DNA from: Zygnema circumcarinatum SAG 698-1b
Lineage: Eukaryota; Plantae; Zygnematophyceae
Reading direction: 5' to 3'
Assembly: GCA_037447605.1 (NCBI GenBank)
Contig: CM074823.1
Location: 682,001 to 746,000, forward strand
DNA length: 64,000 nt
Shown: positions 463 to 41,822 of the stretch, piece by piece
Numbering within the stretch: the first letter of the stretch is position 1
Layout of the letters: every line of letters starts with the position of its first letter
Made by a program: the position numbers and the translations under genes
The notes under the pieces: generated by a model
Database searches by the model: none
What the model was told of the DNA's origin: nothing
Seen by the model: only the letters and a program-made list of their open reading frames with translations

Positions 463-3400
463 TCAAGGAGAACGGCTCGGAGGAGGTCGCCGAGGAGGGG
501 GCCGACGGCTGGGAGGAGGATTACGTGGAGGGGGCCTTTTTGGAGGGGGTCGAGGACGGGGAGGAGGTGGACGCGGAGAAGGGGGTGGTGAAGCTGCAGC
601 AAATCAGGGCATTTTATGAGTTCCTGTTCATAAGTAAAGGTGGACTAACTTCTTCCATAGCTTACATATTCTAATCAAAACACGCCTGTATAAACGTTCT
701 GGGAGGATGCAGAACGAAATGAAAACCATTCAGAATGAGCTTACTTCAAGTCTTTTCACGTGATATTCCGTCATATATGTGCCTCTCAGGCTATGCATCT
801 CCACGGAAAGGCAGATTCCCATGTCATTTCTTGGGCTACGCAATTTTCTCTTTAAAAAGCAGTAAAGTCAAACTAGCACGTTATCTAGCTACTGCAAATG
901 GAGCCGAGATATGCTGTATCTTGCATGAGATTGGAATGAGTCGAGAAGATTATCGAAAGCTAAACCAATGATGTCGGAGCAGCACTCATCCTAATAAATT
1001 CTGCACCATTTTCTGAATGAGATTGCAGAGTTCACCAAGTAATACTTGCCATATGCTTCTAGAAGTTCAAGAATTGAATCTCTTCTATTGGCGGCATCAC
1101 ATGGATCGCATTCAGTGTGCTCTAACAGCAATGACAGGGTAGTAGTAGTTGATAGAACTGCTAAAAAAAAACGAATCTATGAGTTGCAAGTTGAAGCGTA
1201 CCGCGCCTAACACACGTGCCGGATGCCAGCGCATATCCCTTGTCGCATGTGCACGTGGCCGTGTCGTACCCGCACGTGCCGCGGCCCCCGCACGCTCCCT
1301 CGGGCGAACCGCTCTGGCAAAAGGCCGCGCACTCTTGCGGAGGTCTCTGCGCTTGAGGGACGCCACATTCGAGTGATGTGCCAGTGCGATAAATGCAGTT
1401 GTTGGTATAGTTGGACAAGTCGTAGACATATTCAGGGAGGCAAAAGGGTCGCCCATTTTTTGTAATGTTGATTGGCCCGGAGAAGTAGTTGCCTTGGATC
1501 CACACACGGTAAAGGTTACTGCTCGCAAGAGTTATGGAGCCTGTCAACTTGTTGTTGTCTAACCGCCTGATGACATTAAGGGTGGCGTGTTAGAGAGAGA
1601 GAGAGGAGCTTTCCAACAAAACCCGTTCAAGTCTTCTTTGAGTCACTGCCACTGGAAACATTTGCTTCTGCTCTCTGCAAAGTCTCTGACTCCGTCTTCA
1701 CGACCCTACGCAACTTTCAGCCTTCAAACACTAAACCGAATTCAGCCTGCAATCCCATGAACCCTGAACCCACTAAACCCCCATAGCTTCTAAACCCCAT
1801 GACCTGTAAGTCCCTAATCCCCTCGAATTATAAGACCTAAAACCTTTAGGGGTAAACCCTAACCCTAATCCGTAAACTCTAAATACTACACTCCAGAAAA
1901 TAAAGTCCAATCTCCCGCATGCATAACTGAGCGTCATTGTGCGCCAAAAAATCCTGCGCTGTGACAGAAGTGACTAAACCACAACCATGTTGAATAAAAA
2001 CATGAGATAAACTCAATACTCGTGCAAGCGCGCATGTAATGTAATAGTTTGAGAGGTACGAATGTTAATTGCCGATAATAAAAACAATTTAAACTGCAAA
2101 TACAACGTTATCGATGCAGCAGTGCTCACAGTTCTCTCAGTCGGGTGAGTTTACTGATGAAGCCGGACACTCTCCCCTCCAGTTTGTTGTCGTGCAAGTA
2201 CCTACAGACACAACGAAAAAAATCTCAACGGGAAGGATTAGGCTGATTTTGATCGGAACAGGATATTCGAACCAAATCAGGCATGCAACTCCACGTTCTA
2301 AAGTGCGTGAAACACAAAATGAGGAACCAAGAACTATTTATTTTTAAGGTCTGCAGATCCCCAAAGAACTGTAGTGCATATGCATAAAAAATATAAGTCT
2401 CTTATAGTCGAATTCTCAAACACAGTCTCATAAAACGCGGTGCGAGATTAAGAAATGACTCGAATAAAAACACCAAAAAATGAAAACAACGGCGGCGGCA
2501 ACGATTTGGCTCGCAGTCATGGATACGCAACATCGAAAGTTGCTGCTTTGCAAGATGCAATAAGTCACTACTCACAGTTTCAGACTAGTACAGAAAATCA
2601 AAGAGATCATACAAATTTAAGAGGGTCCCAATAGAGTTCGGGACAAAGCCCCTCCGAAGCGTGTGAATGTGAATTAGCATCCACCGATCTGCATAAAAAG
2701 CTTCACGTGGTTTGCAGGAATCGGTAAAATATGGAACTCGTGTTGAAATGATTGCTCAAATCAAAACCGCAGCTCATAGTCGCCACGTGCCAAAAACCCA
2801 ATCAGATCACGTACACGCAACTGACTGTGCAGCGCTTTGGTCGAATCCTTATTTTGCTTGAAGCAATTTCCTTGCGCGAGCAAACAAGTCAACATTCAAA
2901 GCATACTTTGCAACAGTTTAAAAAGCTGCAAGCGCAGTACCTGTTCTCAATTTCAAGGCCATCCCCTGTTGTGTAGCACTGGCCGTACGGTCGATCTGCG
3001 CACGCGGCTAGGCGGCAGATCCGGTCAAACGAAAGATTTGACATGACCCTATGATTTCGATCTTACGGTTGTATGGTTTGGATCCTGCACGTTTGGAGCG
3101 CTTTTGTCGAGAATAGAATATACTTCAACTTCAAATTTTGCTTGAAATTTAGAAGCCTGGAGGAGATGCCGACGAGGGAGGGACATGCGCTATGCACACA
3201 TGCATAATGCATGCACGAGTTGGGGGGTGCGCTGGCACTTGCGGGACGCGACGTGTGTGCTGTGGATGGGACCGCCTCTGTGACGCGACGCCATTGGTTG
3301 ATGCGATGGCATGCCGGCCGGGCTCTCACGCGAGGCTGGCCCCCGCCATGACTGACGTCATGCTTGCGTCGCGCAGCATCAATGCTGGCATTGGCGGAGG

Positions 3401-6400
3401 CAAATGAATCTGTGGCTCCTCTGTATGGCGGGAGGTTGCCGGCTGGCGGAAAGCCGCTCGCCGGCCGGTAAGGGCCGGCCGGCACCGTCAGGATGTAGAA
3501 GTTAATGGTACGGCAGCGTACGGATCAGAGAAGTGGCACGAGGCAGAATCTGAAGCGTATCTGGCAGTGCAACGTGATTGGTTCGATGATTCTCGCCACG
3601 TCAGTGCGATCTGATACTGGGCGAGGGGCTTCCAGATTTCTTGAAACCAACCAACTACCGGTTGGCGCGTGCCTGCGTTGTTGCGATTGCGACGGGGCAT
3701 GAAATGTTGGAGCCCTAGAACATGGGCCGCGTGTGGGCATCATGCACCCATGCACGCATGCGGGACCTATGGCGGATAAACAAGATGCAACGAATAGCAT
3801 TTCTATCACTGGCATTCCTCTGTCTGGGCATTCCTATCACCTTCATTTCAGATTTATGGGGAAAAATACTTACAAGTAGTACAGAGTCGACAGGTTGCGG
3901 ATAGAATCCGGGATAGACCCCGTTAGGGAATTAGTATCCAAGTATCTGCCAAAAAAAACAAATATAGGCACTGAATAAACATGCTGCCACACCCAGCATT
4001 TCTGTCACTGGCATTCTTCTATCTGGCATATGTTTCACTTTCATTTCAGATTTATGGGGAAAAATACTTACAAGTACCAAAGATTCGCAAGGTTGCCGAT
4101 AGAATCCGGGATAGACCCCGTTAGGGAATTATGCTCCAAGTGTCTGTCAAAAATAAAATAAAGGCCCTGAATAAGCATGCTGCCACGACTAGTGTTTCTA
4201 TCACTGGCATTCCTCTGTTTGGCATTTCTATCACTTTTATTTCAGATTTATGGGGGAAAATACTTACAAGAAGTTCAGATTCCGAAGCTTGCCGATGGAG
4301 TCTGGGATAGACCCCGTTAGGGAATTATACTCCAATCGTCTGCCAAAAAATAAAAAAAGAAGGCATTGAATGAACATGCTGCCACGACTAGAATTTCTAT
4401 CACTGGCATTCTGTTTGACATTTCTATCACTATCATTTCAGATTGAAGGGGAAAAATACTTACAAGGAGTACAGATTCTGAAGCTTGCCGATAGAACCCG
4501 GGATAGACCCCGTAAGGTAATTATTTTGCAAGCCTCTGCCAAAAAAAAAAAAAAAGAAGGAACTGAATAAAGATCCTGCCAAGACTAGCATTTTTTGTCA
4601 CTGGCATTCCTCTGTCTGGGCATTCCTATCACTTTCATTTCAGATTTATGGGGACAAATACTTACAATGTTCGCAGATTCACAAGGTTGCCGATAGAATC
4701 CGGGATAGACCCCCTTAGGGAATTAGAAGACAAGTATCTGCCAAAAAAAAAAAAAGCACTGAATAAACATGCTGCCACGACTAGCATATCTATCACTGAC
4801 ATGTCTCGGTTTGGCATTTCTATCACTATTATTTCAGAGTTATGGGGAAACATACTTACAATTCACGCAGATTTGAAAGGTTGCCGATAGAATCCGGGAT
4901 AACAGATAGGGAATTTCTCTGCAAGTGTCTGCCAAAAAATAAAAAAGAAAGCAATGAATAAACATGCTGCCACGACTAGCATTTCTATCACTGGCATGCC
5001 CGTTCGGCTTTTTTATCACTTTTTTCACAATTATGGGGAAAAACACTTACAATTCACGCAGATTTGCAAGGTTGCCGATAGAATCCGGGATACCCGTTAG
5101 GGAACTATCCTCCAAGTGTCTGCCAAAAACAAAAAAAGAAGGCACTGAATAAACATGCTGCCACGACTAGCATCCCTACTACTGGCATTCCCCTGTCTGG
5201 CATTTCTATCACTTTCATTTCAGATTTATGGGGACAAATACTTACAATGTTTGCAGATTCACAAGGTTGCCGATAGAATCCGGGATAGACCCCGTTAGGG
5301 AATTACCCTCCATGTGTCTGCCAAAAATAAGAAAGCAGGGCACTGAATAAGCATGCTGCAACTACTAGCATTTCTATCACTGGCATTCCTCTGTCTGGCA
5401 TATGTGCCACTTTCATTTCAGACTTATGGGAAAAAATACTTACAACCGTTCCAGATTCGCAAGGTTGCCGATAGAATCCGGGAGAGACCCCGTTAGGTAA
5501 TTGCGATACATTAACCTGCCAAAAAAAAAGGGGGGCTTCACGAGTCTGGCCGATGTTGGAGGCAACAAGCATCACTCAAGTGCAATGAATGCTCGAGTGA
5601 ATGCGAGGAGCGGAGTTAAGCAGAGACAATACGTCCGCGGGCGTGCACGTGACGTGACATTCTGATCACGAATAATCTTATCTTGCTCTTATCGATAAAA
5701 GCTCTATTTCAGATTCAGGTTGAGTCCGAGGGCTTTGCGCCAATTTTTTCTTTCTTTTCCTTAAGAAAACTGCGCGCCATAAGCCAGCGCTATCAGCAAT
5801 TAAAACTTCTTCTCCCTCCCTGGCAGCTTGTATTTTTTCTCCACAATGTAGACGGTAGATATATATATATATATATATTTTTAAATGGATATAATTTGAT
5901 TTAGGCGTGTGCCTGCGCAGCCAGCCAGGACGCGAGCACGCACGCATTGGCAGCTCCGCTTCCCTGAAAGTTGCAGTGCTTCTACTAATTCAACATCTGA
6001 GCCCTCCCTACCACTGTGTACCCGCAAACATGCATGGAACGCATCCTTAACGAATGGAGCCACTCACAAATATGACAACTCTGTCAGGTTACCGATGGCA
6101 GGTGAAATGGTTCCTCTAACGCCATAGTCAAATAAATCTCTGCATACGGCAGGTTAGCAGTGTGAGCGTCAGAAGAAGAAAGGGGCGCGGGCAGTAGAGG
6201 GACTGCTCCGGGCGGCCTTCTGAGGAGGCTTCTTCCCGCAGACCCTCCTTGCTATGTAACCCGCGGAGCCCTTCAAAATCCCAAGCGGTGGTCAGTCTAA
6301 GTGGCTCACATGAAAGTAACGCGCCCACTTAAGTCGCATCTGATCCCACTCCAGGTGCTGCAGTCGCGGTTACTCCAATACCAGGAGGTGAGACGATACA

Positions 6401-6700
6401 CGTCATAAAATTCCGCTTTGACAGCGAGAAGAGCGTCCCCTGCGCCCAAGCGCGAGCAGATGCAAGATTGGGGCCGAGGTTCGGTTCAAAAAGCACAAAC
6501 AGAGGCCACGACAAGACGCGACGCGGGCAGTCCGCCTCTCCCCTTCCATAGAGGGCGGGCGGGCGGGCGGGCCGCGGCGGCTCACTGTCTCGCGGGTCAA
6601 TCTTCACAGCGGCGGCTTCGCGCGGGGCGGCGGCGGCGGCGAAGAGGAGGACCGCCACCGCGAGAGAGAGAGAGAGAGACCGACACCGCGCGCGCGCCAT
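463..6700 (-). CDS. Secreted leucine-rich-repeat protein, ~508 aa, 15 exons: signal peptide, LRRNT cap, plant-type LRRs, Cys-rich/EGF-like domain, Pro/Arg-rich tail
   Basis: GT-AG exons 6700-6586, 6439-6310 (DALLAVK..LTSW..CSTWSGIRC cap), 6139-6068, 5515-5444, 5317-5246, 5119-5051, 4928-4860, 4737-4666, 4535-4464, 4339-4268, 4143-4072, 3945-3874, 2201-2130, 1566-1202 (LRR end plus CAAFC..CGGRGTC..CTCDKGY..C) and 593-463 (SPPPSPRPPPPRPRPPPKRPPP..*). All phases are compatible and the total is 1527 nt. Confidence 0.9.
3785..5530 (-). repeat. Tandem array of nine ~195-205 bp units, each one LRR exon (72 or 69 nt) plus a ~125-130 nt intron
   Basis: The + strand motifs ATACTTACAA..GGTTGCCGATAGAATCCGGGATAGACCCCGTTAGGGAATT..CTGCCAAAAA..GCACTGAATAAACATGCTGCCACGACTAGCATTTCTATCACTGGCATT recur every ~200 bp. 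Confidence 0.97.
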
Positions 6701-7980: not shown

Positions 7981-8040
7981 CAATTTGCATTGATCTCACG
8001 ATGGCAAGGCCATCAAACGTACAGGGAGAAAATCATGGGG
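7981..8040 (+). repeat. Dispersed repeat family A, copy 1 (others at ~8345-8425 minus, ~14030-14097 minus, ~39197-39470 plus)
   Basis: Shared motif GCATTGRnCTCAnnATGGYRAGGCCATCAAAYG..CATGGG, seen by eye at four sites. The copy near 8400 is the most diverged. Confidence 0.7.
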
Positions 8041-9219
8041 AACCAACAGAATTGGTCACAAAGGACATAAAAACAAGGAAAGAGCTGATAACCGGAATGC
8101 TACGCCTAGGCCCAACAACACGGCACTAGAAGCAGCCGCGAAGGATAATAAATCGCTGCAGGTCGGATCAGCCAACACGACATCCCCAAAAATACGCTTA
8201 GAACCATCCAAAGAGCAAGATCAAGGCACACGGCCGAGGTGGTATAACATGGCGAGGCCATCATCATTGTATTAATTGTTTTATAGATACCACGTTTCAC
8301 TCCCAACCTCTATTTCTTCCATAGCATAGGCCATGTGTGACTGCCTCCCATGCCTTGCCCTTGCCGATGTCGATGGGCCACGTCATGGTATCACCATTGT
8401 GAGATCAATGCCCATTTTCTCCCCTGGGCCCTGGATAATGTCGGAACATAACACCAAACGGCTGCAATGACTTGCCACTCACTTCCTGAGGCAGCCTCAA
8501 GATCATGGCCCACTAACAACGGCACCGTTGTCTAACAAGGACAATCATCCACTTCAGTAAGCATGGCTTTGTAAAATCGACGAAGGCAGGCTGAGTTCCC
8601 AACATGCATCAACCCAAGCGGCTGGTTCTGTCTCCCCATGTCTCAAGCGCTAAGGATGCTCTTCAGCCGTGAGGTCAGCCTGGCGCACCACTGCAGTAAA
8701 CCGATTCCTACTGATTCCTACTGCAAAAGATTCAAAAGGGACCCACATGAACCAACCTTGCAAAGGACTGAAGCAAAGGCCATGCGAGACCTCCGACTGC
8801 ATCCATGCTTCCTTCGATGTCTACATCCTGTCCCATCATGCTACAAAAAACCGGAGTCAATCAGTGCTATAAATCCTGTTATTTCTCAGAGCACTGTACA
8901 AGAGAGCTTCCGAAGCCGAGATGTCGCTTATTTCGCTTCTGTTTCTACGCCTAGCGCGAGCTATATCTCGGATAAAACTGCAACAAAAAAGGGGAAAGTG
9001 ATTCTGCAGGCTCAAGAGCAACGCTAAAATGATGGCCGACACCAACATCCCTCAAGTCTCAAATGTCTCGAAGGGAATAAACGGTCACAGAATAAATTTT
9101 CCATAACAAGAAATCTGCACTTGTGGGGTTTCCTGAGCGCTCTTGACGTTGAACGACTGGTTAAAAAAGCACGCGCTATCCTTCATGCGTGGCTTCTATG
9201 CATGTCATCACATTCAGGG

Positions 9220-10197
9220 TCACGAACTGCCCTCCGCGTCCTGCATTTACGAAGGAATTGACAAGAACAGAAGAAAAATAAGGAAGGAGATGAAAATGCA
9301 AGCAAGCAAAAATTCCATCAGTCAACACGAAGCAACAGGTTTCAGAAAGCTGGACATCAAATGTCAAGAATCAGCACAGATACAAGCGAGGTATCACGCA
9401 GTGCAACGTAAAGCTTGTGGTGGCGTCTCCGTAGTTAGAACCAAAGGTGCCGAAGCTTCAATGATGCAGATAGTCCTACAAGCTGACCTAAACGCCTGAC
9501 GTTGTGATGATGTCATAAACAAAGGAGCAAATTGATGCAAGCACAGTATGAAGCACACTGGAAAGTAGGCACTCGGTCTCCCATGAAGAAAGAGCTGCAC
9601 CTTTGACTCTATCCCAGCTGCTGCAACGGAGCTCTTCCCAATGTCTGGTGTTAAAGAACCGGCTAAATTTCCAGTCTCTAAAGTCGCTCTTCAATCGTGA
9701 TCTTGTAGCCTTCGGCCTGTGCTTGACATCAACCAGAACAAGAAAACATCCTTCCCTTGTTTAGCTGTTGGCTGAATAGCATCCACCAAGTTCACTGTTC
9801 GTTGGAAAACAATGTAAGCAGGAAAGAACAAGTCAATGCAGGAAAGCGTCAGGAGACTAAAAAGGAAAACTGATAATAACAACAGAAATCTATCCACCAG
9901 ATCCTGCTTTTGATCGTGCAGCCCAGCCCTCCAGACTTACTGGAAAATGCAAAAGGCACCGAACCTCGTATCCTTCCTGGCTAAGATACAGCAAGCATCA
10001 AAGAGCCACCATTTAAGAAAAACCAGAGAGGCAGCACGCCTTTATCCCTTCTATGCCCCTTCATTTATCTTGCGCTCCAAAAAAAACATTCTGCACCTGC
10101 TCAGTGAGCACCCTATGGCTTGCCCACAGGTCCCGCTGCAGTAGCACCAACGCTCCTGCAGAGGCCACTGCAAACCCCGCCAAGAAGGCGCAAAATG
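9220..10197 (-). pseudogene. Broken copy of a small plant/algal membrane-anchored protein gene (FLAGFAVAS...LWASHRVL..IEERL.RLE type)
   Basis: Exon ~10197-10097 FCAFLAGFAVASAGALVLLQRDLWASHRVLTEQ|GT. Exon 9716-9601 AEGYKITIEERL*RLE has an in-frame TAG (9680-9678) and an apparent frameshift. Possible last exon 9240-9220 DAEGSS*. No start codon seen. The family assignment is from memory of small plant 'RLASFFAG..D...SH....Q..LE.RI..LE' proteins. Confidence 0.45.
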
Positions 10198-10630
10198 GGT
10201 TTTTGGGTGGTGGGGGGCGGGGGGGGGGGAGAAGGAGGGGAGGAGGGGGAGGGGGAGGGAGTGGAGGTGGGGGAAGGGGAGAGGTGGAGAGAGGGGAAGG
10301 GAGGGGGGGGGAGAGGGGAAGGGGAGGAGAGGGGAAGGGAGGTGGGGGAAGAGGGGAAGGGATGGGGAAGGGGAAGGGGGAGAGAGGGAGGGAAGAGGGA
10401 GGGTGGAGAGTGGGGGAAGAGGGGGAAGAGGGGAGGGAGGAGGGAGTGGAGGTGGGGGAAGGGGAGAGGTGGAGAGAGGGGAAGGGAGGTGGGGGAAGAG
10501 GGGAGGGAGGAGGGAGGAGGGAGGAGGGAGAGGGGAGGGAGGGGGTGGGGAGGGGGAAGGGGGGGGGTGGAGAGGAGGAGAGAGGGGAGGAGGGGAGAGG
10601 GGGGGGGGGGGGAAGTGTGAGGTGACTGAC

Positions 10631-11193
10631 CTAAAGTCTGAGCCCCAGCAGCCCTTGATAGTGAGATGCTTTCGGTTGATCTGAAAGTGAGGGTTCATGC
10701 TGACAGTTCCGTTGTCCGTGTACTGCCCAACGACAACATATGTGCCTCCGTCTCTGCATAGATCCATGCCTTCCGTTACGGCGGCAGGGACACCTGTCGC
10801 TTCAATCACGACATCGGCCATTCTTCCCTCCGTCAGTTGTCGAACTGCTTCCACCCTCTCTGCAGGAGTGCACAGCTGCACTCAGCATGCAAAAAAGAAC
10901 AGAACAAAAAGAATATGTAAGAGTTACAGGGTTTTAAATCTTATCGGGTTTGCTTCCCATTGCTATGGAGGTGCAGCTTTGGTACATACATCACGTTGAG
11001 GAATGAAGAAGGATAAGAAAAGCTTGAGATAAAAGGAGAAGGAAAGAGAGACGAAAGTGAAGTAGACTGACCTTCTGAATGTCAACGGTTGCGTCGATGC
11101 CAAACTTGTTCACAACTTCCAGACGATGCTGAGGTGCCCCAATTACAATTACCTGCAAAAAAGAAGTGCAAGAGGGGATGGAGAGGTGGTGAG

Positions 11194-11229
<36 letters not shown>

Positions 11230-11748
11230 AGAGAGTGCGAGAGAGAGAGAGAGAGCGATGGAAAAATAACAGACAGGGAGGAGGGAGGGAAAGAAGGGGT
11301 GTCGAAGAAAGAAACATCAACAAAAATCACCTGAACTTATCATCTCCCTGCCAACCCTAAAACCATGAGTTACCCTCCATACCCCTACCAGCTCCCTCCA
11401 GAACCCTAAAGCCCTGACAGCAACCCTAAACCCTGACCTGCATTGCTCCGCTACAGCGCGCCAAAATCGCCGCGAGGAGGCCCACCGGGCCGCTCCCCTG
11501 CACCACCACGCGGTCCATGAGCCGTACGCCGGAACGGTCAACGGCATGGAGCGCCGTCGGTAAACTGCGCACAGGGAACCGTTGCAGACTACGGCGAGAT
11601 CAGGGAGGGAGGGAGGGAGGGAGGGAGGGAGCACATGTGCTGGAGGAGGGAGTTGAGGAGAGAAGAGAGGAAACAGAGATAGGGGGGAAGGGAGAAGGAT
11701 GGGGAGGGGAGAAACAAGAAACTAAGGAGGGAATTGGGGACATTGGGG

Positions 11749-14799: not shown

Positions 14800-15052
14800 G
14801 GGATTCAGGGACATTAGGGTTCAGGGAAATTAGGGTTCAGAGAAATTAGGGTTCAGGGATATTAGGGTTCAGGGCCGGGGTGTAAGGGCCCTTCCCAGCA
14901 AGGTTCAGAGCTGCTTCGCAGTCGTAGTCTTAGGGTTGCAGGCGTCAGGGCTTCGGAGTTACGCAGTTAGGGTTTGTAGGGTTCAGGGTTCAGAGTTCTT
15001 CAAATTTAGTCGTTGAAGGGTTTGGAATATTAGGGACTAGGGTTCAGGGTTT
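14800..15052 (+). repeat. Degenerate telomere-like/telo-box repeats (TTAGGGTTCAG) upstream of the SecA start
   Basis: Repeated ATTAGGGTTCAG(G) and TAGGGTTT motifs. Confidence 0.6.
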
Positions 15053-15069: not shown

Positions 15070-34851
<19,782 letters not shown>

Positions 34852-39394: not shown

Positions 39395-41822
39395 GGAGGA
39401 GAGAGAGGGGCTAGGATTATCCCTTGCCCACTGCTTCCAATGAATGCATTGGGCGGGCCCAAGTGCCACAAGAGGGACTCTACGACATGTGGAATGGCAC
39501 ATGTATTAATTCTGCAAACATTTGACATGGGGATTTGAGGGTTTTTAGGACACGCCTATATCCCCTTTATACCCAATAACAAGATTCAATGGTTATTACA
39601 CTTTTATTTCATTTTGAACAAACCCCAAAAATCTGCTCCGCAATTGCCCATCCTTCAACTTTTTTTATTTTGGTTTCTTCGCTTAATTCTGCTCACCTGC
39701 AATTTCTGCTTCGACTTCTTCGCAGAAGAAGGGTTTTCCTTTTTTTTTATAGTTTTTGACCGAAAACTGACCCCCCCCTCACCTTGATTTTTCTTCCTCT
39801 TCTTTTTCTTCACTGTTCCAATTTCTCTAATTTCACTCCCATTTTCTGAATCCCCCTTTTTTTCCTCATGCAGATTTTCCAAACCCTCAATTTCTTCCTC
39901 CAAACCAGCCCCTTTCCCAAACTCCGCCTCACTGATGGCCCCCTTTTTTAATTTTTTCAAAAGGCGGTAATCTGAATTTAACTCCTCCAAATCGTCGATT
40001 TTTGAACTTTTTCCCGAACTGCCCGAACTCCGCTTTCGAGCCTCCTCCTTCCTTTCCGAAACTTTTTCATCCCCTGCCCGTTCCCCTGCCTTCTTTCTTT
40101 CCACTGCCTGCGGCTCCTCTAACGCGCGGGCCTTCAACTTTTGCTTCCGCTGCTTCTCTCTCCCTTTGTCCCTGCAAATCCAAATAGCCCAAAAACTCGG
40201 TTTCTCGCGAAAAACCCATCTCCGCAAACAAAAAAACAGTCCCATTGCACTCATTTCCGAAACATATCCCACAGATTCAACGGGTTTTTAACATTTTTAA
40301 ACGGATTTTTAACAGTTTTTGAACGGTTTTTGAACGGTTTTTGAACGGGTTTAACGGTTTTTTTTGCATGGAAGGGAGTCTCCAATTACCGGAAGGGGAT
40401 GGCCTGCAGGTCGATGCCCTCCGCGGGGACGAAGTGAAGGGCGGCGTCCTTTCGGCGGCGGAGCTCGGGCATGGAGGGGAGGTGGAGGAGGCCGAAGGCC
40501 ATGGCCAGACGGCCGAGAGGGAGCTCCTTCCACCTGGGGGAGGGAGAGAGAGAGGGAGGGAGGGATGGAAATGGGAGAGGGAGGGAAAGAAGGGGGGAAA
40601 GAGAGGAGGAGGAGAGAGAGGGGCTAGGATTATCCCTTGCCCACTGCTTCCAATGAATGCATTGGGCGGGCCCAAGTGCCACAAGAGGGACTCTACGACA
40701 TGTGGAATGGCACATGTATTAATTCTGCAAACATTTGACATGGGGATTTGAGGGTTTTTAGGACACGCCTATATCCCCTTTATACCCAATAACAAGATTC
40801 AATGGTTATTACACTTTTATTTCATTTTGAACAAACCCCAAAAATCTGCTCCGCAATTGCCCATCCTTCAACTTTTTTTATTTTGGTTTCTTCGCTTAAT
40901 TCTGCTCACCTGCAATTTCTGCTTCGACTTCTTCGCAGAAGAAGGGTTTTCCTTTTTTTTTATAGTTTTTGACCGAAAACTGACCCCCCCCTCACCTTGA
41001 TTTTTCTTCCTCTTCTTTTTCTTCACTGTTCCAATTTCTCTAATTTCACTCCCATTTTCTGAATCCCCCTTTTTTTCCTCATGCAGATTTTCCAAACCCT
41101 CAATTTCTTCCTCCAAACCAGCCCCTTTCCCAAACTCCGCCTCACTGATGGCCCCCTTTTTTAATTTTTTCAAAAGGCGGTAATCTGAATTTAACTCCTC
41201 CAAATCGTCGATTTTTGAACTTTTTCCCGAACTGCCCGAACTCCGCTTTCGAGCCTCCTCCTTCCTTTCCGAAACTTTTTCATCCCCTGCCCGTTCCCCT
41301 GCCTTCTTTCTTTCCACTGCCTGCGGCTCCTCTAACGCGCGGGCCTTCAACTTTTGCTTCCGCTGCTTCTCTCTCCCTTTGTCCCTGCAAATCCAAATAG
41401 CCCAAAAACTCGGTTTCTCGCGAAAAACCCATCTCCGCAAACAAAAAAACAGTCCCATTGCACTCATTTCCGAAACATATCCCACAGATTCAACGGGTTT
41501 TTAACATTTTTAAACGGATTTTTAACAGTTTTTGAACGGTTTTTGAACGGTTTTTGAACGGGTTTAACGGTTTTTTTTGCATGGAAGGGAGTCTCCAATT
41601 ACCGGAAGGGGATGGCCTGCAGGTCGATGCCCTCCGCGGGGACGAAGTGAAGGGCGGCGTCCTTTCGGCGGCGGAGCTCGGGCATGGAGGGGAGGTGGAG
41701 GAGGCCGAAGGCCATGGCCAGACGGCCGAGAGGGAGCTCCTTCCACCTGGGGGAGGGAGAGAGAGAGGGAGGGAGGGATGGAAATGGGAGAGGGAGGGAA
41801 AGAAGGGGGGAAAGAGAGGAGG
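39395..41822. repeat. Direct tandem duplication, unit 1213 bp, containing the last two helicase exons and 3' flank
   Basis: The ORFs at 39655-40272 and 40868-41485 are identical with an offset of 1213. The junction lies in GA-rich sequence at ~40608. Confidence 0.95.
39655..40533 (-). pseudogene. Duplicate copy of helicase exons 10-11 (40533-40390 and 40171-39655)
   Basis: Matches 41746-41603 and 41384-40868, including splice sites. Confidence 0.75.

Follow-up and report, generated by a model that had tools for sequence, protein, structure and literature searches.

Nine consecutive LRR exons in the green alga Zygnema circumcarinatum SAG 698-1b, whose introns are still recognisable copies of one another and whose ligand-face codons differ from unit to unit, raise the question of whether the locus is an actively diversified receptor system or an ordinary gene with a rapidly changing binding surface. 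An earlier note, made from the sequence alone, had proposed a recently expanded recognition surface, positively selected or actively diversified. We followed it up in the whole stretch of DNA that contains the array (the window: 64,000 nucleotides, positions 682,001 to 746,000 of contig CM074823.1, assembly GCA_037447605.1), using DNA runs (X1 and X2) and RNA runs (X7 and X20), all four of which consist of assembled contigs, which drop rare variants. The locus probably arose by the tandem duplication of an exon, together with gene conversion and selection for diversity, in an ordinary expressed gene for a secreted LRR protein.

The exon array and its host gene

Nine units of about 196 nt (196–198 nt each), every one made up of an acceptor, an exon and an intron, occupy positions 3776–5530 on the minus strand, which bears out the exon+intron units of the earlier note. 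Tandem Repeats Finder gave 8.8 copies of a 196–198-nt unit over 3776–5502 with 81% matches, and a blastn search of the 64-kb window with one unit as query gave nine matches of 80–89% identity and zero elsewhere in the window. Both ends of the array fall within intron sequence. The exons are bounded by AG and GT, encode one LRR each and are separated by introns that are all in phase 2, each beta-strand being split by a splice junction. Seven of the nine are 72 nt long; exons 3 and 4 (69 nt) have each lost one codon at G-S with the frame kept. All nine are in frame, both deletions being whole codons, and none of the 54 codons at variable positions is a stop. The variable (x) residues of the LxxLxLxxN motif listed in the earlier note match the translation exactly, including those at the last junction (YY|Y.HD), which the RNA joint 3871->2198 confirms. 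The likeness of the units had been overstated there: the introns, called near-identical, differ pairwise by 10–20% (mean 16%), the 30-nt exon core is exact in three of nine units, and scaffold silent sites, also taken as near-identical, differ by 12–14%.

The array sits in a 15-exon gene that runs from 6700 to 463 on the minus strand and has 508 codons (1527 coding bases with the stop; Table 1). Its product consists, in order, of a signal peptide, an LRRNT, about 13 LRRs, a Cys-rich/EGF-like module and a 43-aa Pro/Arg tail. A transmembrane helix and a kinase are absent from this gene, in which RNA joins 1202 to 593 and the reading frame then passes through the tail to the stop. The same splice to 593 ruled out two alternative gene ends, namely read-through past 1202 and an acceptor at about 1160. 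Homologue and domain searches and the fold prediction were made on exons taken separately. The predicted fold of the Cys-rich exon has a pLDDT of 75; structure comparison with it gave zero matches at E<=0.001, weak EGF-type rows such as reelin, and a best Z of 2.1, and is uninformative, and an Atlas search returned LRR look-alikes only, under 0.9. As it lacks a membrane anchor or kinase, the product is a secreted binder and not a signalling receptor, and the Pro-rich tail suggests that it is probably held in the cell wall. The best reading of the gene is an ordinary, expressed one for a secreted LRR-EGF-Pro-rich protein.

Table 1. Exons and related features of the LRR gene, in window coordinates
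Feature	Position	Strand	Evidence
Exon 1, with the start codon and a hydrophobic stretch resembling a signal peptide (by eye)	6586..6700	-	Translation; RNA contig loose end 6585 runs into exon 2
Exon 2, LRR N-terminal cap	6310..6439	-	Pfam LRRNT_2 E=0.004, under curated cut-off; RNA joint 6139/6310
Exon 3, single 72-nt LRR exon, outside the young array	6068..6139	-	Translation and RNA
Array exon 1, 72 nt, its 5' half the most divergent	5444..5515	-	RNA joints both sides
Array exon 2, 72 nt, 88-nt tract common with unit 5	5246..5317	-	RNA joints both sides
Array exon 3, 69 nt, in-frame one-codon loss	5051..5119	-	RNA joints both sides
Array exon 4, 69 nt, in-frame one-codon loss	4860..4928	-	Upstream RNA joint among joints listed
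Array exon 5, 72 nt	4666..4737	-	AG/GT bounds; neither junction among RNA joints listed
Array exon 6, 72 nt	4464..4535	-	RNA joint to exon 7 in X7; DNA contigs X1, X2
Array exon 7, 72 nt	4268..4339	-	RNA joints both sides in X7; DNA contigs X1, X2
Array exon 8, 72 nt	4072..4143	-	Upstream RNA joint
Array exon 9, 72 nt	3874..3945	-	RNA joint 3871->2198 in X7 and X20
Decayed LRR exon of 113 nt, each of the three frames broken by stops	2576..2688	-	Bypassed by RNA joint 3871->2198
72-nt LRR exon downstream of array	2130..2201	-	RNA joints both sides
Exon with last LRR strands, Cys-rich linker and EGF-like module	1202..1566	-	Pfam EGF_2 E=0.01, under cut-off; RNA contig 1278-1566
Last coding exon, 43-aa Pro/Arg-rich tail and stop	463..593	-	X7 loose end at 1202 matches window 564-593; translation

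RNA run X7 has joints on the predicted sites at 6310/6139, 6066/5513, 3871/2198 and 2129/1565, joint depths being 465–795, and one of its contigs passes from 1202 into 593. The gene is thus expressed, without a membrane anchor or kinase. Within the array, the X7 joints listed connect exons 1-2, 2-3, 3-4, 6-7 and 7-8, and splicing follows the genomic order wherever it is visible (these five internal and all flanking junctions); junctions 4-5, 5-6 and 8-9 are not among the RNA joints listed. Run X20, which has a fixed difference at 6373, contains the entry and exit junctions of the array (depths 128 and 246), but the exon 6 bin is uncovered in it and exon 7 almost so (window 4152–4545). This gap may reflect another allele, skipping, a close paralogue or a data filter, and the hole proves nothing.

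Because all array exons are of phase 2-2 and each beta-strand is divided by a junction, the array might act as a combinatorial splicing cassette, in which in-frame exon skipping would join new halves of binding strands and yield many isoforms. The X20 run, with both outer junctions and the exon 6 bin empty, would fit such a role, and alternative splicing of exons of this kind has been published for brown algae, in some Ectocarpus ROCO genes. We nevertheless consider this unlikely. X7 gives consecutive junctions of even depth (465–708), no clean exon-skipping joint was found among the X7 and X20 joints listed, and the X20 joints between distant exons carry foreign letters between their two sides and therefore come from paralogues; minor skipping could escape, since the contigs drop rare isoforms and the joints seen are those listed. 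The RNA joints with foreign letters reveal expressed paralogues with other x codons.

Divergence of the ligand-face codons

The x positions line the concave face of the LRR (PMC11378527 and established LRR structure). Between units, 63% of the bases differ at the x codons (codons 1, 3, 4, 22 and 23), compared with 9% at the 17 scaffold codons; codon 19, which is not a beta-strand x site, is also hypervariable (58% of bases differ). The reported richness of the x positions in Tyr, His, Arg and Trp is real, since these four make up 21 of the 45 x residues (47%) as against 26% at the same positions in homologues and 18% by codon count.

A codon model of the nine sequences, with branch lengths taken from the intron tree, gave an omega of 13.9 at the five x sites with respect to the intron rate (95% range 9–26; p ~1e-29 versus neutrality), a value that is an upper bound if conversion has made the introns younger than the x codons. 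When units were left out, the x-codon value was 8.5–11.7. Scaffold codons change at 0.54–0.57 times the intron rate. The x sites were chosen by motif, though the earlier note had already seen variation there. Because the introns serve as an internal clock, selection on the ligand face becomes measurable inside one gene. It turns out that the x codons, instead of being no more divergent than the introns, as the earlier note had said would refute its proposal, change at about 14 times the intron rate, and the scaffold at about 0.55 times, in support of a recently expanded, positively selected surface.

The rate excess at the x codons is an observation; its cause is less certain, and diversifying selection is the one that we infer from these comparisons of sequence. 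As the x codons are near saturation, selection is weakly separable from a higher local mutation rate or from introns made younger by conversion: for the five sites, a rate multiplier of 10.5 with omega=1 and a model with selection differ by <1 log unit. With the faster clock allowed, omega=1 is rejected for six variable sites, codon 19 being added (p=0.007), and gives p=0.067 for the five.

It is quite unlikely, in our judgement, that positive selection played no part, the x codons being simply unconstrained and older than introns homogenised by conversion, with the rate gap an artefact of the intron clock. Such an account is helped by the nearly equal fit of the rate multiplier at the five concave sites and by the conversion that is shown for one tract (see below). 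However, conversion would have to stop at codons lying 2–12 bases from the splice sites, on both sides and in all units, and this itself needs selection; the aromatic and basic bias and the zero stops point to function; and the test that includes codon 19 rejects omega=1.

Recombination, paralogous units and the neighbourhood

Units 2 and 5 have in common an 88-nt tract with one mismatch, which reaches across the exon core and the x codons on the 3' side into the start of the intron (permutation p=0.0004) and is a case of gene conversion. Distances among 5' exon halves, 3' exon halves and introns show no correlation. A PHI-like test was marginal (p=0.04–0.05 at two of four window sizes), and no Mantel test of x codons against the preceding or the following intron was significant. 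A model with multi-base codon changes gained 4.9 log units at the x sites of all nine units (simulation p ~0.004) and nothing on the scaffold; the gain at the x sites is zero without units 1 and 5. A multi-base codon mutator was therefore rejected, the signal being lost once unit 1 and the converted unit 5 were left out. The whole-codon look of the x sites is accounted for by mosaicism and by the greater age of a unit at the array boundary, and a mutator is unneeded.

The history that we favour would begin with one LRR per 72-nt phase-2 exon. Unequal crossing over between these frame-symmetric exons could have multiplied one acceptor+exon+intron unit to nine, since the reading frame survives the addition of any such exon. 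Conversion and continued crossing over between units would prevent introns and scaffold from drifting apart and would reshuffle exon halves, as units 2 and 5 illustrate, and exchange with paralogous arrays is also probable. Selection over generations would then fix changes at the solvent-exposed beta-strand codons that flank each splice junction, and the exons, all spliced in genomic order, would yield a single main protein of about 13 LRRs. Binding to a changing biotic partner, such as a microbe, a parasite or a mate, would be the probable driver. The locus is a compact natural record of the growth and diversification of a plant-type LRR binding surface.

The two DNA runs come from separate studies and disagree, with the assembly and with one another, at a few sites in the flanks. 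Exons 6 and 7 are present, with a single changed letter, in their contigs over 4234–4655 and 4242–4610, and X1 contigs contain most of exon 1 and the upstream end of the array unchanged. Together the DNA contigs cover both ends of the array and units 5–7, and none spans the whole. The summed depth of contigs that are at least 90% alike is far above single-copy, reaching about 50-fold at a site in intron 7; contig depth is not copy number, yet this exceeds what nine units give, so many similar units with similar introns must be present elsewhere in the genome.

These units raise the prospect that the many young arrays of the genome form one exchanging pool of LRR cassettes, with recombination fast or directed enough for binding surfaces to vary between the clones or cells of a single strain. 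The likeness of at least 90%, even in introns, the one conversion tract, and the missing cover of exons 6 and 7 in X20, where both flanks are present, would suit such a pool. If such a pool existed, this alga, a close relation of the land plants, would possess wall-bound binders in an anticipatory repertoire; we hold this to be decidedly improbable.

Directed or somatic diversification, by VLR-like copying of cassettes or by a targeted mutator that rewrites ligand-face codons from a donor pool, is very unlikely. The multi-base gain at x sites in the full set and the many near-identical units elsewhere would agree with it, but the former disappears without units 1 and 5, and units 1, 6 and 7 are kept in DNA runs that differ at flanking sites. 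Moreover, a search of both strands of the 64-kb window found no orphan or inverted cassettes, and no incomplete germline gene, recombinase or reverse transcriptase was seen in it. The part of the earlier proposal that spoke of active diversification is not supported by these results: no cassettes lie outside the array in 64 kb, no skipping joint is among those listed, units 6 and 7 are conserved in two DNA studies, and the excess of multi-base codon changes is not robust. We see no sign of an antibody-like diversity machine at the locus. It is hardly credible that misassembly produced the array, or that it is a non-coding satellite. The assembly does contain at least one exact tandem duplication, of 1.2 kb, at another place in the window, and none of the contigs crosses the whole array; but the units are only 80–89% alike, DNA contigs cover both ends and units 5–7, and RNA joints on predicted splice sites refute the idea for the units that have them.

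In several further places the runs depart from the assembly. At 2135 and 2030 all four runs have letters other than those of the assembly, through assembly error or strain difference; that at 2135 alters the codon-22 x residue of the exon at 2201-2130 from Arg to Ser. Other letters occur at 4078-4079 and 4672, both in the codon-22 x site, of array exon 8 and array exon 5, respectively; X1 and X7 lack the reference letter at 4078, and that at 4672 may come from unit 2 sequence aligned to unit 5. Such letters may reflect x-site alleles that differ between strains, or else paralogues.

At the end of the array, within a long intron, lies a GC-richer stretch (3130-3780) with single-copy depth in the DNA runs; no second copy was found in the window, and it may be an old insertion. 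The window opens with the 3' end of a convergent gene (plus strand, 1-87, stop at 85-87); the LRR gene has its own stop about 380 bases away. By eye, exon pieces indicate a zinc alcohol dehydrogenase-like gene at 10600-11600 (minus strand) and a SecA translocase-like gene at 15370-33000 (plus strand), and the neighbouring genes have very long introns of purine/pyrimidine microsatellite. Degenerate repeats resembling plant telomeres are found within introns and between genes at 1700-1870, 14800-15050 and 15452-15676. A DEAD-box-helicase-like gene on the minus strand has at its 3' end an exact tandem duplication of 1213 nt (39395-41822; 100% identity), which is probably an assembly artefact.

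Relatives and known systems

A search with the Cys-rich exon gave 16 proteins of 33–53% identity, the named ones being from Mesotaenium endlicherianum and Closterium; a word-based homologue search with the EGF exon, constrained by length and word rules, gave nothing. Seven Cys of the Cys-rich/EGF-like module are invariant in 11 relatives. The Mesotaenium and Closterium proteins P0005, P0007, P0013 and P0016 have the same module at 33–40% identity, and the transcript product P0017 has the same whole layout, including the Pro/Arg tail. Many relatives, unlike the array gene, continue into a kinase, lectin or papain domain; in P0013 and P0014 the LRR-Cys/EGF module is joined to lectin-like and papain-like parts. 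In these algae the module has the look of a mobile cap that has not been described before.

The Closterium gene for P0016 also has 72-nt LRR exons, but its introns are mutually unrelated and not tandem copies as in the array gene. This gene structure indicates that one LRR per exon is old in the family, and that tandem copying together with the introns is recent. Local duplications are also present in the Closterium relative (L001): a 101-nt unit comprising an exon end and donor site is present in 3.4 near-identical copies (7990-8336), and the last LRR exon is repeated twice (9965-10197). For streptophyte algae we found no literature that treats arrays of this type or the LRR-EGF family, and the family merits study with regard to biotic recognition among algae related to land plants.

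Proteins of the LRX type (leucine-rich repeat extensins; PMC4769139) also have a signal peptide, an LRR domain, a Cys-rich region and a C-terminal Pro-rich tail without a membrane anchor. The array gene differs in its EGF-like module and in having one Ser-Pro3 only in its 43-aa tail, and an LRX identity was rejected because the repeated Ser-Pro3-5 extensin modules of that family (PMC4769139) are absent. The LRRs of P0017 matched GSO1, FLS2 and ERL1-type ectodomains far better than LRX2, which ranks 60th among the PDB matches of this relative. In lamprey variable lymphocyte receptors (VLRs), somatic assembly draws on donor cassettes in the flanks to complete a coding region that is unfinished in the germline and free of introns. 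Like the array gene, they have LRR modules that vary on the concave face. A VLR-like identity was rejected, as the array gene is complete, with all of its 508 codons, is spliced, and has no extra cassettes in the window.

The closest parallels are in how the exons behave. In LRR kinases of rice, phase-2 introns split the Leu of xxLxLxx, exons have been duplicated and selected sites fall in xxLxLxx (PMC3050792). Intron position, exon duplication and xxLxLxx selection are all as in the array gene, which, unlike land-plant LRR kinases, is without transmembrane and kinase parts and has introns still recognisable as tandem copies. The earlier note took such introns to set the locus apart, but LRR genes of Tetrahymena consist of exon+intron repeat units alike at the nucleotide level and generated by unequal crossing over (PMC6564038). 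Phase-2 introns, nucleotide-level likeness of units and recent clonal expansion are common to both; the Tetrahymena genes differ in their 90-bp exons, another LRR type and a link to the REP retrotransposon, and no REP-like retrotransposon was found beside our array.

Brown-algal ROCO genes have 72-nt phase-2 LRR exons, selection on the concave face, inactivated exons and splice variants (PMC3341825, PMC11378527). The array gene resembles them in its 72-nt phase-2 one-LRR exons and probable concave-face selection, and perhaps in a decayed LRR exon left in an intron. Where Ectocarpus ROCO genes have inactivated and inverted exons, there is here one decayed exon (2688-2576), and none on the opposite strand in 64 kb; where Ectocarpus uses alternative splicing, X7 is in order wherever visible, and X20, as contigs, lacks exon 6 cover. 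No ROC-COR domain follows the LRRs, since the gene ends in the EGF-like and Pro-rich exons, and what sets it apart from ROCO genes is a secreted product whose LRRs are of plant type and are followed by an EGF-like module and a Pro-rich tail. The mechanism is already known from brown algae and ciliates, and a single locus adds no new one unless within-clone variation is shown. Fixed-length phase-2 LRR exons, tandem units, a fast concave face and recombination among units, the features of arrays of the Ectocarpus and Tetrahymena kind, are all present in the Zygnema gene. It works like the arrays of Ectocarpus ROCO, Tetrahymena and rice genes, and is itself neither a ROCO, a receptor kinase, an LRX nor a VLR.
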